From the sequence record OR805292.1: DNA of 64,000 bases, one strand, 5' to 3'. The position numbers and the translations under genes are program-made. Every line of letters begins with the position of its first letter. The stretch's first letter is position 1. Positions 22,235-52,272 of the stretch are shown piece after piece. The notes beneath the pieces are model-generated. The model was not told the DNA's origin and did no database searches. It saw only the letters and a list, made by a program, of their open reading frames with translations.

Positions 22235-22267
22235 AAAAAAGTGTAGTAGAAATACTACACTTTTTTA
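22235..22267 (+). terminator. Terminator after capsid gene
   Basis: aaaaaaagtgtagta/tactacacttttttt. Confidence 0.85.
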
Positions 22268-48168: not shown

Positions 48169-50190
48169 ATGAAAAATTATTTGTTAACTGTACCTGTCAA
48201 TTCTAATGTAGATTATACTAAACTAGATATACACGATTTTGTTCCTGCAATAAAAGAATTAACAACTAGATTATTTTATAACACAGGCGTAACACTTCAA
48301 AAAGAAACTATTTTGTTTAATGATTTGGTAGTATCCGAAGATGCTAGTCGATTAGCATTTATTAATAGCATTTTGCATAATCTATTGAATACCTGCTCTA
48401 CTACTGAGTTAGAAAATATTGCAGATGAGTGTGATACTATTTGCACAGAATACTATAATAATTCTAGAATCGCATATTCTGAAAGAGAATACAATGCATA
48501 TAAAAATATAAAAAATAATGAATCGTATTTTTCAAGTCTAAAATATTATGAACAAAAATATGTGATTGATGCCATAGAATATTACGAAGAAGAATCTGAT
48601 ATTAATTTCTCGCATGATACAAAAATATACCTATCATCTTTATATTCGAAACTTAATAAAGCACAGCAGAATTTTTCTAATAATATAATAAAACATACTG
48701 CAAAAAACAGGTATTACTTTGAACACGATTTCCAAGTTGAAGGTATACCAGATAACATAAAAGATATAATGCGGGAGAATGCAAGGGCAGACGGCCATAA
48801 ATCCGGATATGTAGCCACAACTGAACACTACATCTACACAGCCATAATGCAATATTGTTCGTACGAGTATACTAGAAAAACAATGTTAGAAGCTTTTTAT
48901 GTAGCTAGTAACGGCGAATATAGCAATACAACTAATATAACAGATATTGTATCTATTAAATCTGAAATAGCAAAATTGTTTGGGTTTAGTACGTTTGCAG
49001 AAAAATCATTAAAGCATAAAATGGCAAAAACACCCGATAATGTATTTTCTGTATTAAATAAATTGAAAGACTTAGTAGTAGATAAAGCATTAGAAGAAGA
49101 AAAAGAACTTTTAACTTTCGCTAAATCTAAAGGATATCAACGACCTTCTGTCCGCGCCGCCGACAGAAATTATTATTCTACTATGAGATTAAAAGAAGAA
49201 TATAATTTAGACAAAAAGGTTATAGAAGAGTATTATACATATGCAGGTGTTCTTCCTTGTATATATGGTGTTATAAAAAAACTTTTTGATGTTACATTTG
49301 TAGAAGACCCTAATGCATCTGTATGGCATGAAGATGTTAAATGCTACAAGGTATTCGAAGATAGCAAGCATATTGCATATATTTTTATAGATCCGTTTTC
49401 TAGGAACGGAAAACAATCCGGGGCATGGATGAATGGTATTGTTAAAAGGGATTTTGCTTATAATACTACTCTACCGGTTGCAGTAATAGTGACTAATCTG
49501 TCAAAAACATCTATTACATTAGATGATGTACGTACACTCCTGCATGAATTTGGTCATGCATTACACCATGTACTTACTAAAGTAGAATTTCCTAATTATA
49601 ATGGAATTTCTGTAGAATGGGATGCAGTAGAATTGCCGAGCCAATTATTGGAAAATTGGATTAATGATAAAGAGCTTTTAATTGAAATGTCGTCTCATTA
49701 TTCTACAAAAGAAAAAATTCCAGAATATATAATTGATAACTGGTTAGCTATAGATAATTATATGGCTGCGTCTTCTTTAAGAACACAGTTATTGTATTCA
49801 TTAGTAGATATGAAAATTTTTAATAGCAATGCAACGACAGATAAAGATTGTATAGAAATTTTTAATGAAGTAGCAAAAGATTTAAAATTAAACATAGAAG
49901 ATAATCCGTTTATGCATTTGTTTTTATATTCGTTTTCTCATATATTTTCCGGAGGATATACAGCAGGTTATTATAGCTATTTGTGGGCAGAAATTATGTC
50001 AAGTGATGTTTATTTAGAATTTAAAAATAAAGGAATGTATAATATAGAATTTGCTAATAAAATTAAAAAAGATATTCTATATGCAGGTTCTATTAATGAC
50101 TTTGATGTAATGTATAGAACATTAATGGGTAGAGATCCTGACCCAGAATCTCTGCTAATAGTTAGGGGATTGCAGAATAGCAAAAAATAA
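48169..50190 (+). CDS. prlC: M3-family metallo-oligopeptidase (oligopeptidase A/Dcp-like)
   Basis: HEFGHALH, WDAVELPSQLLENW, HIFSGGYTAGYYSYLWAE. Confidence 0.93.
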   Translation: MKNYLLTVPVNSNVDYTKLDIHDFVPAIKELTTRLFYNTGVTLQKETILFNDLVVSEDASRLAFINSILHNLLNTCSTTELENIADECDTICTEYYNNSRIAYSEREYNAYKNIKNNESYFSSLKYYEQKYVIDAIEYYEEESDINFSHDTKIYLSSLYSKLNKAQQNFSNNIIKHTAKNRYYFEHDFQVEGIPDNIKDIMRENARADGHKSGYVATTEHYIYTAIMQYCSYEYTRKTMLEAFYVASNGEYSNTTNITDIVSIKSEIAKLFGFSTFAEKSLKHKMAKTPDNVFSVLNKLKDLVVDKALEEEKELLTFAKSKGYQRPSVRAADRNYYSTMRLKEEYNLDKKVIEEYYTYAGVLPCIYGVIKKLFDVTFVEDPNASVWHEDVKCYKVFEDSKHIAYIFIDPFSRNGKQSGAWMNGIVKRDFAYNTTLPVAVIVTNLSKTSITLDDVRTLLHEFGHALHHVLTKVEFPNYNGISVEWDAVELPSQLLENWINDKELLIEMSSHYSTKEKIPEYIIDNWLAIDNYMAASSLRTQLLYSLVDMKIFNSNATTDKDCIEIFNEVAKDLKLNIEDNPFMHLFLYSFSHIFSGGYTAGYYSYLWAEIMSSDVYLEFKNKGMYNIEFANKIKKDILYAGSINDFDVMYRTLMGRDPDPESLLIVRGLQNSKK

Positions 50191-50337: not shown

Positions 50338-50634
50338 ATGAACATTCATTTATCTTTTAAGGAACAACTTTCTAAGCTAATTGATGAAAACATAAATAAA
50401 TACCCCGATGCTATAGATTGGATAGTATCTCAAATGGCTTTAATAGATATTGAATCTAAAAAGACAAAAGCAGAATCTATTATGGAAGCTCTTATAGGTG
50501 ATACTGAATTTTTTAATAACCCTATAGAACAGGGTGGAAGTAATAAAGATTTTATAGTGTGGTATGTAACTAAATATAATTGTACTACTAAATACGCTAT
50601 AGAACGGTTACTTCATTATTGTAAACAGAATTAG
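50338..50634 (+). CDS. Hypothetical protein
   Basis: SD aaggga; follows promoter. Confidence 0.7.
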   Translation: MNIHLSFKEQLSKLIDENINKYPDAIDWIVSQMALIDIESKKTKAESIMEALIGDTEFFNNPIEQGGSNKDFIVWYVTKYNCTTKYAIERLLHYCKQN

Positions 50635-50750
50635 CCCTTAGGACCGCCAAATGTTTTGGCTTAAGGCGCACCGGTGCTGTATCGGAGCTTAGTGATTCGC
50701 TACCACAAAAGCATAAGCAGCTAGGAGACTTAAAACGTCTCCTATTTTTA
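50634..50750 (+). ncRNA. Candidate small structured RNA / attenuator
   Basis: Three GC-rich stems plus terminator taggagac/gtctccta followed by T6. Confidence 0.4.
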
Positions 50751-50761
50751 TATATACAGGA

Positions 50762-50956
50762 GTGAAGTATATGAATAGCGATTATGCCTCTATATTTATA
50801 GTAATATTTGCTATATTAGTTGTGTTTATTTGTAAACCGACAACATTTAATGAGCCTAAAAACATTATCGATACAAACAAAAGCAATGTAGCGAACGACA
50901 GTATTCCACTTACAGGAAACATTTCTAGAACACCGGGTATAGGTATAGGATTATGA
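50762..50956 (+). CDS. Small single-TM protein
   Basis: Hydrophobic N-terminal helix; ATGA-coupled to next ORF. Confidence 0.6.
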   Translation: MKYMNSDYASIFIVIFAILVVFICKPTTFNEPKNIIDTNKSNVANDSIPLTGNISRTPGIGIGL

Positions 50957-51105
50957 AAAAGAAAAACCCAATCGAGCGCAATCCAGTTGCACATCATGTA
51001 AACACATTTAACAAACCTAAAGTAGAAAAAGATAAGACAAAATACTCTAGGAAACAAAAACACAGGACTAGGAATAGTCCTGATTTTTTATGTATAATAT
51101 ATTGA
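50953..51105 (+). CDS. ArfA-like small basic protein (50 aa)
   Basis: Not in ORF track; MKKKNPIERNPVAHHVNTFNKPKVEKDKTKYSRKQKHRTRNSPDFLCIIY; YSRKQKH resembles the ArfA SYxRKxKH tail. Confidence 0.6.
   Translation: MKKKNPIERNPVAHHVNTFNKPKVEKDKTKYSRKQKHRTRNSPDFLCIIY
51063..51089 (+). terminator. Intrinsic terminator inside the ArfA-like ORF
   Basis: caggacta-GGAA-tagtcctg then a T6 run, ending 14 nt before the TGA. Confidence 0.8.
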
Positions 51106-51153
51106 CAGATATTGTATTTGGAATATACAATATGCATAACAAGGAGTGTTATT

Positions 51154-52272
51154 GTGGCAAAAACGAAACATATTTTTAAAGTTCCAGATTATTCTCTTTT
51201 AAAATTAGATTCTAAGACATATACTAAGGATTATAGGAATGCAATTTGGTATTTGCATTATGAAGCATCTGCTGCTACTCTTAAATCTGCAACACTAAAA
51301 TGGATTAAAAATAATACATCTTATGATGTAAAAGATTTATCTTCGTTGAGTGATTCTGATTTTTCTATTATCGGAAAATATTGTACTATACTAAATGCCG
51401 GCGGACAACTTCCTAGTCATGCTAATTTCGTCGAATCACACATAGACAAGATATTTCAATCTATCAAAAAAGAAGAAATTACAGAAATTGTCGAAGAACC
51501 AGAACCTAAAATAGAGCATGATAGTTGCAAAGTTAAAAAAATAAGTATACAGGATAGAATTAAGAGCCAGGCATATAAAGCTTGCGGAGAAATTGAAGGA
51601 TTAATAGATCAATTTTATAGTAATCCTAGTGAGTTTGTAGTATCCCAGCAAGAAATAGAATCCTTATTTAAAAAATCAGAAATAAAATCCCATCATGTAA
51701 AATATATTACCGAAATATATAGCACTAATAAAAAAGAATTAGAGGAGCTTTCGGCAGGAAAATCCGAACAGTTAAACGAAGGTTATAATTTTTTAACTAA
51801 ACGGGATATAAACAAAGCCATAAAGCTATTTAATTTAATTATAGAAACTGCGTCTAGTAGTAAAATAGTTACTGTTAAAAAACGAGCTAAAAAACAAAAG
51901 CCATTGGATATTTCTAAATTAGTTAAATCATTTAAATATTTAGAAAAAAGCACAGATCTTAACTTAGAAAGTATTAATCCTGTCCATATTGTTGGTGCAA
52001 AAGAAGTATGGGTGTTTAATACAAAAAGTAGAAAGTTAGGAAAATATATTGCTTTAGACACTACAGGTCTATCAATAAAAGGAACTACTATAACTAATTT
52101 TTCTGAAAAAAGTATAGAAAAAACTATTCGTAAACCAGAAGAATATTTTAAAAATATTAAGAAAATTTCTAAAAAGGCAAAAGAAAAATTATTTGTAGAT
52201 ACTAAATCTGTCGAAACTAAACTAAAAGGAAGAACAAACGAGCATTGTATCATTCTTGAGGTTATAAAATAA
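51154..52272 (+). CDS. Conserved hypothetical protein of T4-like phages
   Basis: GTG start after SD aaggag; TTGACA at 51102; C-terminal WVFNTKSRKLGKY...KT.RKPE motif. Confidence 0.7.
   Translation: MAKTKHIFKVPDYSLLKLDSKTYTKDYRNAIWYLHYEASAATLKSATLKWIKNNTSYDVKDLSSLSDSDFSIIGKYCTILNAGGQLPSHANFVESHIDKIFQSIKKEEITEIVEEPEPKIEHDSCKVKKISIQDRIKSQAYKACGEIEGLIDQFYSNPSEFVVSQQEIESLFKKSEIKSHHVKYITEIYSTNKKELEELSAGKSEQLNEGYNFLTKRDINKAIKLFNLIIETASSSKIVTVKKRAKKQKPLDISKLVKSFKYLEKSTDLNLESINPVHIVGAKEVWVFNTKSRKLGKYIALDTTGLSIKGTTITNFSEKSIEKTIRKPEEYFKNIKKISKKAKEKLFVDTKSVETKLKGRTNEHCIILEVIK

Follow-up and report, generated by a model that had tools for sequence, protein, structure and literature searches.

In the 64,000-nucleotide stretch of sequence record OR805292.1 analysed here (the window), an open reading frame (ORF) of 50 codons on the plus strand, at positions 50953-51105, is read through a terminator hairpin before it reaches its stop codon. 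The encoded protein is a member of the Pfam family DUF7230, and comparisons with related phage proteins lead us to conclude that this family belongs, very probably, to the ArfA superfamily as a divergent branch, the remaining doubt being convergence in a short lysine-rich motif. On balance, we favor the interpretation that the ORF product is a ribosome rescue factor of the DUF7230 branch of this superfamily, made from a non-stop mRNA and gated by transfer-messenger RNA (tmRNA). Because the family is related to ArfA and the terminator lies ahead of the stop codon, as it does in arfA, the phage probably carries its own back-up factor for freeing stalled ribosomes. Systems of this kind are already known from ArfA and BrfA, both of which are made from non-stop mRNA. 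What appears to be new is the link between DUF7230 and ArfA, the spread of the family through phages and non-enteric bacteria and, judging from the sequence, a jumbo-phage copy that keeps the tmRNA-gated architecture.

An in-frame hairpin ahead of the stop codon

The region matches Pseudomonas phage Cassandra, a PA5oct-like jumbo phage, at 100% identity. Against further Wroclawvirus jumbo phages of P. aeruginosa, such as PA5oct, MIJ3 and Paride, the identity is 98.5-99.5%. Intrinsic terminators of the host type should be functional in a genome of this kind. An earlier note, made from the letters of this DNA, had described the ORF as unannotated; this was mistaken, because the Cassandra and PA5oct records annotate it as a hypothetical protein (Cassandra_0509 and EST35_0191, respectively). 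The layout that the note described, in which the frame passes through a hairpin and a U-tract to a single stop behind a hydrophobic FLCIIY tail, is present in the sequence. Its elements are as follows.

50953-51105, plus strand: ArfA-like ORF, 50 codons and stop (Cassandra_0509 / PA5oct EST35_0191; DUF7230; phrog_6310)
50974-51075, plus strand: conserved DUF7230 domain, residues 8-41, with NPVA-helix, FNKPKVE and DKTKYSRKQKH, from the family match and alignment
51058-51063, plus strand: codons K36-H37, aligned with the K44-H45 Lys-His (KH) motif of ArfA
51063-51082, plus strand: terminator hairpin inside the ORF, 8-bp stem and GGAA loop, codons 37-44
51084-51089, plus strand: tract of six T residues (T6), codons 44-46, the likely 3' end of the terminated transcript
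51090-51105, plus strand: hydrophobic tail codons (CIIY) and the sole in-frame stop, unconstrained in that the tail of a close relative is unrelated

Translation from the ATG at 50953 gives MKKKNPIERNPVAHH...KQKH RTRNSPDFLCIIY and ends at the TGA at 51103-51105, which starts 14 nt past the last T and sits within the -35 hexamer TTGACA (51102-51107) of the next gene's promoter. The hairpin at 51063-51082, picked up by a terminator scan, consists of CAGGACTA-GGAA-TAGTCCTG followed by a single A and then the T6 tract. It begins at the last base of codon 37, the His of the KH motif, and encodes residues 38-44. Folded with its A-tract/U-tract extension, it reaches -13.1 kcal/mol (z = -4.0), and 0 of 200 dinucleotide shuffles were as stable. 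If transcription ends at the T6 tract, as expected, some 45 codons would be left without a stop. The minus strand has TGTTTTTG after the same hairpin, and 51063-51082 may therefore act in both directions.

A scan of the whole window for strong terminators that close long ORFs identified seven others, located at 1438, 9562, 44609 and 58171 on the plus strand and at 22266, 12810 and 9589 on the minus strand. In all seven the stop codon lies within the hairpin or at its first bases, and the hairpin at 51063 is therefore an exception among the gene-end terminators of the window, as the earlier note had also pointed out. This contrast bears on another explanation, in which an ordinary small basic DUF7230 protein happens to have an operon terminator on its unconstrained 3' end and is not regulated by tmRNA. 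Full-length mRNA would then arise through coupled translation or leaky termination, and the 50-residue protein would be the product. A ribosome that follows closely behind RNA polymerase can block hairpin formation, as in attenuation, which counts in favor of an incidental overlap. The genome is also compact, with the next promoter beginning within the last codons of the ORF. The stops of the other seven genes speak against this explanation, and we return to it below with the evidence from relatives.

Probable kinship of DUF7230 with ArfA

The window protein matches DUF7230 (PF23876) with 59.7 bits and an E-value of 3e-16 over residues 8-41, the gathering cutoff being 27, and all 24 aligned relatives match the same Pfam family. 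It also belongs to PHROG 6310 (phrog_6310), while a scan of NCBIfam gave no match. A HMMER search of 1.84 billion representative proteins returned 25 matches at E<=1e-3. Two long multi-stretch matches (P0013 and P0019) proved to be repetitive eukaryotic proteins; these were judged spurious and left out. The family alignment shows a basic N-terminus followed by NPVAKH..FNKP.V.RDKTKY.RK.KHK, with K36 nearly invariant, and tails that differ in length and often contain many F, L, I and C residues. A weak match to DUF6291 was seen in 6 of 24 members (best E-value 0.012). A word-indexed protein search with the 50-residue protein found only the protein itself; with tblastn, members turned up in PA5oct-like phages, in PAK_P1 and about 130 records of the Pakpunavirus group, and in numerous Vibrio phages. 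An AlphaFold2 model is extended except for a single short helix spanning residues 11-19 (predicted TM-score 0.21), and Foldseek returned no matches for it, as expected for an extended peptide.

The protein was compared with E. coli ArfA, taken from NC_000913 (accession given in PMC7538156). BLASTP aligned residues 23-44 with ArfA residues 31-52 with 9 of 22 positions identical and a pairwise E-value of 0.002. Within this alignment KVEKDKTKYSRKQKH stands against ArfA residues 31-45, the Y, R, K, K and H being identical, and the Y-x-R-K-x-K-H end, including the KH motif, is common to ArfA and DUF7230. Profile alignment with hhalign was colinear over 43 columns, placing DUF7230 residues 8-41 along ArfA residues 8-54, with a P-value of 4.6e-4 and a probability of only 33%.

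Several results weigh against this kinship and against the function that we favor. At E<=10 in Pfam, neither the window protein nor its 24 aligned relatives matched ArfA (PF03889). No solved ArfA chain was matched by the window protein or by the DUF7230 profile, and such chains were present in the library searched. A local cross-search with hidden Markov models (HMMs), controlled with 20,000 shuffled, composition-matched decoys, was weak for E. coli-type ArfA (empirical p about 0.001) and gave no signal for Pseudomonas-type ArfA, which lacks KH. Furthermore, the shared segment is short and lysine-rich, and ArfA and BrfA are regarded in the field as convergent although both carry a KH motif (PMC8012679). 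The HMM search that the earlier note had proposed gave membership of DUF7230 and no direct match to ArfA.

The direct signal being weak, the claim of homology rests on intermediates. A tblastn search of phage genomes with ArfA found ArfA-like genes in Pseudomonas pf16, Salmonella Arash, Pseudoalteromonas J2-1, Citromicrobium RXM, RsoM2USA, Erythrobacter XM05 and Roseobacter CRP-212. The J2-1 protein, of 51 residues, exceeds both Pfam thresholds over overlapping residues, with 41.3 bits for ArfA across the whole profile and 28.6 bits for DUF7230. It matches the solved ArfA chains 5U4I, 5MDV and 5H5U over nearly its full length with E-values of 1e-5 and the same three-residue gap. It also matches the window protein (E-value 3e-7) and the DUF7230 profile (96.6% probability). 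Similarly, the CRP-212 protein is a Pfam ArfA member (33.3 bits) that begins with NPVAK and aligns over its full length to the DUF7230 profile with 86% probability. Through these two proteins, the description of the window protein as ArfA-like can be upheld.

The same evidence addresses the possibility that the product is a convergent basic peptide with no part in rescue, such as a nucleic-acid-binding or nucleoid-associated phage protein, whose KH end and hairpins are coincidences of lysine-rich and AT-rich sequence. The low complexity of the protein, the weak direct statistics against ArfA and the empty Foldseek and solved-structure searches would all agree with such a peptide. It would not account for intermediates that exceed the curated thresholds of both families, and the shuffled controls were matched in composition. 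In addition, the hairpins occur in bacterial genomes of normal GC content as well, as in Sedimenticola (-39 kcal/mol). We consider convergence of this kind very unlikely.

In the hhalign register, K36-H37 of the phage protein corresponds to K44-H45 of ArfA, the KH motif that touches the mRNA entry channel (PMC8012679). PKVE corresponds to the ArfA strand Q27-E30, which docks on release factor 2 (RF2), with V and E identical, and the modeled helix at residues 11-19 corresponds to the ArfA helix 15-24. Thus ArfA (E. coli YhdL; PF03889) and the window protein are both small and basic and show the same order of elements: a short helix, a hydrophobic residue, a V-E strand and a K-rich segment ending in Y-x-R-K-x-K-H. 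In both genes the ORF contains a hairpin that closely follows KH and precedes the stop, and a hydrophobic, poorly conserved tail (FLCIIY in the phage) follows it. The truncated product would end about 8 residues past KH in the phage, as against 9-10 past K44-H45 in E. coli ArfA. Unlike ArfA, the phage protein has DKT in place of KKGKGS, a three-residue gap, and its N-terminal half is divergent (NPVAKH..FNKP versus NAIEALLHDPLFRQR in ArfA). The window gene also differs in being phage-borne and in lacking a direct ArfA HMM match, and its hairpin is a clean intrinsic terminator whereas that of E. coli arfA is a long RNase III-type stem.

A peptide with this resemblance could also serve as an inhibitor or decoy that sits in the empty mRNA channel or the A site without triggering peptide release, and would thereby block tmRNA-SmpB or host ArfA, or silence host ribosomes. 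The conserved channel-binding motif at the C-terminus would suit such a role. So would the divergence of the N-terminal half, the part that contacts and activates RF2 in ArfA; in ArfA, a bulkier residue in place of A18 blocks the activation of RF2, and the residue that the hhalign register sets against A18 is not a small one. On the other hand, PKVE aligns with the RF2-docking strand, and the chromosomal members of the Methylococcales, with their housekeeping contexts and arfA-type hairpin, are better suited to a cellular rescue factor. We regard inhibition as an improbable function for this protein.

The other phage-encoded ArfA proteins (RXM g10 and those of J2-1, pf16, Arash, XM05 and CRP-212) are small and ArfA-related like the window protein. 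They differ from it in exceeding the ArfA threshold, in that most have an ordinary stop, and in being known from annotation only. RXM g10, which is covered by a single sentence in PMC8953757, likewise keeps both a hairpin and a hydrophobic tail within its ORF. The pf16 gene (L087:595-735; 72.5 bits) lies where only an ORF on the opposite strand is annotated, and the Arash gene (L088:517-741; 67.8 bits) is misnamed 'ribosomal protein L2'. The RsoM2USA match (L091:568-753; 21.7 bits) falls below threshold and is antisense to an annotated hypothetical gene. An apparent P. aeruginosa chromosomal arfA was found in OQ572405.1 (L167; 'UNVERIFIED Pseudomonas phage Y3', 24 kb), a record that may represent host DNA rather than a phage. 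This arfA encodes a protein of the KGKGSYRRE type that lacks the KH motif, and it has an in-ORF hairpin before the stop, and the copy in pf16, a P. putida phage, resembles host ArfA of that type. Since host ArfA is of the KGKGSYRRE type and lacks KH, the PA5oct gene is not a recent capture of the host gene.

Two other rescue factors invite comparison. In BrfA (B. subtilis YqkK), a rho-independent terminator before the stop leads to a tmRNA-regulated product, as proposed here for the phage gene, and the C-terminal end, which occupies the mRNA channel, also bears a KH motif (PMC8012679). Only the B. subtilis group has BrfA, whose active form comprises about 62 residues. No sequence relation to BrfA was found: Pfam at E<=10 gave only DUF7230 and the weak DUF6291 match, and the BrfA chain 6SZS was absent from the solved-structure matches of the protein and of the DUF7230 profile. 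The resemblance to BrfA is one of proposed mechanism only. ArfT of Francisella belongs to a broadly distributed charged-helix family; this rescue factor has about 40 residues, binds the ribosome through a charged segment and recruits release factors. In contrast to what we propose for the phage gene, ArfT has not been reported to be made from a non-stop mRNA, and tandem repeats are common in its family. No sequence relation to ArfT was found either, the charged-helix family being absent from the Pfam and NCBIfam scans.

Terminator placement among relatives

The earlier note had proposed that homologues be checked for a terminator before the stop codon. Such an arrangement is found in many lineages, specifically at the position of the KH codons, although most phage relatives have an ordinary stop. 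Nine long-tailed metagenomic relatives were fetched, and all nine have a strong hairpin that starts from the KH codon and lies ahead of the stop. A T tract follows in eight of them (L007-L010, L094-L096 and L098), while in L097 the hairpin has none. The stop of the Erwinia phage Hallingskeid gene falls within the T tract. Genes of the Methylococcales carry in-ORF hairpins of -24 to -39 kcal/mol, and those of Sedimenticola and Chromatiaceae have textbook terminators at KH, of about -39 kcal/mol.

A set of 109 non-redundant loci with DNA, from phages and bacterial chromosomes, was divided into long-tailed loci, with at least 12 residues after KH, and short-tailed loci. The 66-nt segment at KH was among the lowest 5% of local folding energies in 30 of 46 long-tailed loci and in 0 of 63 short-tailed loci (Fisher 1.6e-15; Mann-Whitney 1.7e-12). 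With a perfect-stem criterion, 23 long-tailed loci had a hairpin entirely before the stop. In 20 of these the hairpin started between -11 and +6 nt from the end of the KH codon, and a T-rich tract came next in 13. The ordinary order, stop and then terminator, was seen in only 2 of the 63 short-tailed genes. E. coli arfA, included as a positive control, shows the same layout as the long-tailed loci.

These numbers have to be read with some caution. The 109 loci are not phylogenetically independent, and many are from the Methylococcales, although several unrelated lineages contribute. Moreover, most phage copies (IMG/VR, PAK_P1) lack a hairpin and end at an ordinary stop 2-10 residues past KH, and the PAK_P1 copy even overlaps the next gene; each of these points weakens the case for a tmRNA-gated design. 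The non-stop design is therefore not a requirement of the family as a whole, and the PA5oct group is unusual among phages in keeping the arfA-type arrangement.

The normal stops of most phage homologues likewise favor an incidental overlap of terminator and ORF in the window. Such an overlap would not explain why hairpins in relatives are tied to the KH codon with no earlier stop, nor why so few short-tailed genes place a terminator after the stop. A further point against it comes from phage 30-3, a close relative in which the tail is wholly different. The homologous ORF of 30-3 is annotated with 75 codons (L168:301-528), a reading that results from one single-base length difference; we take neither version to be a broken gene. 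The domain and the residues encoded by the hairpin are the same as in the window, whereas the tail is unrelated and reaches into the control region of the next gene. Because the tail differs while the domain and hairpin are kept, the sequence past the terminator is unconstrained as protein. This fits a product that would end at the terminator, or at least a tail that is dispensable. As annotated, by its longest frame, the 30-3 ORF also runs into the beginning of the next gene; the overlap is probably without biological meaning if transcripts stop at the terminator. Taken together, we judge an incidental overlap to be unlikely, and we continue with the rescue factor made from a non-stop mRNA.

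Gene surroundings, proposed mechanism and reach of the family

The ORF lies in a compact setting, whose other features are listed here.

50722-50744, plus strand: terminator-like hairpin and T5, closing the preceding unit
50771-50956, plus strand: Cassandra_0508, a 61-residue ORF with a hydrophobic N-terminal segment, upstream of the ArfA-like ORF
51102-51131, plus strand: sigma-70-like promoter TTGACA-N18-TACAAT, 11 of 12 matches, serving Cassandra_0510
51154-52272, plus strand: next gene, Cassandra_0510 (phrog_11903), function unknown, in its own transcription unit

Since the hairpin at 50722-50744 closes the preceding unit, Cassandra_0508 and the ArfA-like ORF form a two-gene unit flanked by two terminators. 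The TGA of the 61-residue ORF overlaps the ATG of the ArfA-like ORF (ATGA), an arrangement that suggests translational coupling of the two. Pfam and PHROG scans gave no family match for the Cassandra_0508 product. The promoter downstream can be compared with the motifs given for PA5oct promoters, TTGAC / TATAATA (PMC7318152).

Between the gene end at 50634 and the two-gene unit lies a GC-rich intergenic stretch of about 110 nt (50635-50745, plus strand), which ends in the terminator at 50722-50744 and T5. Its folding energy is -34.4 kcal/mol, with a z-score of merely -1.7. Scans for Rfam families, tRNA and tmRNA gave no match in this stretch, and it is absent from the four non-coding RNAs listed for PA5oct. 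It could be a 3' untranslated region, a small RNA or a leader of the downstream genes. Further upstream, a 673-residue ORF (48169-50190, plus strand) is annotated as oligopeptidase A in PA5oct and as hypothetical in Cassandra; the position of a peptidase gene two genes ahead of the putative rescue gene may be coincidental.

Based on this organization and on the likeness to arfA, we propose the following sequence of events, in which termination in vivo, tagging by tmRNA, ribosome binding, recruitment of a release factor and rescue activity are all steps that we infer. The gene would be co-transcribed with the upstream small membrane-protein gene, and most transcripts would end at the in-ORF intrinsic terminator and so carry no stop codon. 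Ribosomes would stall at the 3' end, and the product would be tagged and degraded for as long as host tmRNA-SmpB has capacity. Once tmRNA is saturated, whether by mass mRNA breakage in infection or by an mRNA-cutting defence, an untagged product of about 45 residues would escape. Its K/R-rich C-terminal end (KYSRKQKH) would then enter the empty mRNA channel of other stalled ribosomes, and the N-terminal half, with the NPVA helix and the PKVE strand, would recruit a release factor so that the peptide is freed.

The reach of the family was surveyed in 185,579 species genomes with a degenerate DNA pattern back-translated from the family motif DKTKYxRKxKH, which gave 68 loci. The Methylococcales genes among them are full DUF7230 members (60.8 bits). 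They are chromosomal, adjoining mnmG-rsmG-parA-parB and aroQ-accB-accC (e.g. L115, L163, L124 and L097), and these bacteria may use DUF7230 as their own ArfA. Genes of Endozoicomonas combine an ArfA-like N-terminal half with the DKTKY end. The RDKTKYxRKxKH end was also seen on small proteins with quite different N-terminal halves (L119, L120, L118, L122, L134 and others), in metagenome-assembled genomes (MAGs) of Firmicutes, Bacilli, Desulfobacterota, Verrucomicrobiota and Alphaproteobacteria and even in two archaeal MAGs. Most of these proteins have ordinary stops and score under the DUF7230 threshold; the shared end may be a ribosome-channel module carried on varied heads, or it may reflect contamination with phage DNA.

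Proteins ending in R-D-K-T-K-Y-x-R-K-x-K-H occur in Alphaproteobacteria, Methylococcales, Sedimenticola, Endozoicomonas, Bacteroidota, Verrucomicrobiota, Desulfobacterota and Firmicutes MAGs and in hundreds of phages. We offer only tentatively the broader idea that DUF7230 and these small proteins constitute a domain-wide ArfA superfamily, and we hold it to be rather doubtful at present. When over 15,000 genomes were surveyed, ArfA was assigned solely to Gammaproteobacteria, some Betaproteobacteria and the B. subtilis group (PMC11633108). If the broader idea is correct, ArfA-type rescue would be far more widespread than is currently held.

A search of the literature found no paper on DUF7230 and, beyond the one-sentence annotation of RXM g10, no paper on phage ArfA-like proteins; ArfA is unmentioned in the current version of PMC10680825. 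A review has predicted that more small release-factor recruiters exist that escape sequence searches (PMC8012679), and if our interpretation is right the DUF7230 family would be one of them. This would provide a testable function for a Pfam family of unknown function that is present on bacterial chromosomes and in many cultured phages, among them PA5oct-like jumbo phages, Pakpunavirus therapy candidates and Vibrio phages. A phage rescue factor gated by the tmRNA capacity of the host would represent a new kind of auxiliary or counter-defence function. On the broader, domain-wide idea, phages would carry rescue factors of their own, either constitutive, with an ordinary stop, or tmRNA-gated, as in the PA5oct type, and these would keep ribosomes available when infection or an mRNA-cutting defence floods the cell with non-stop messages.

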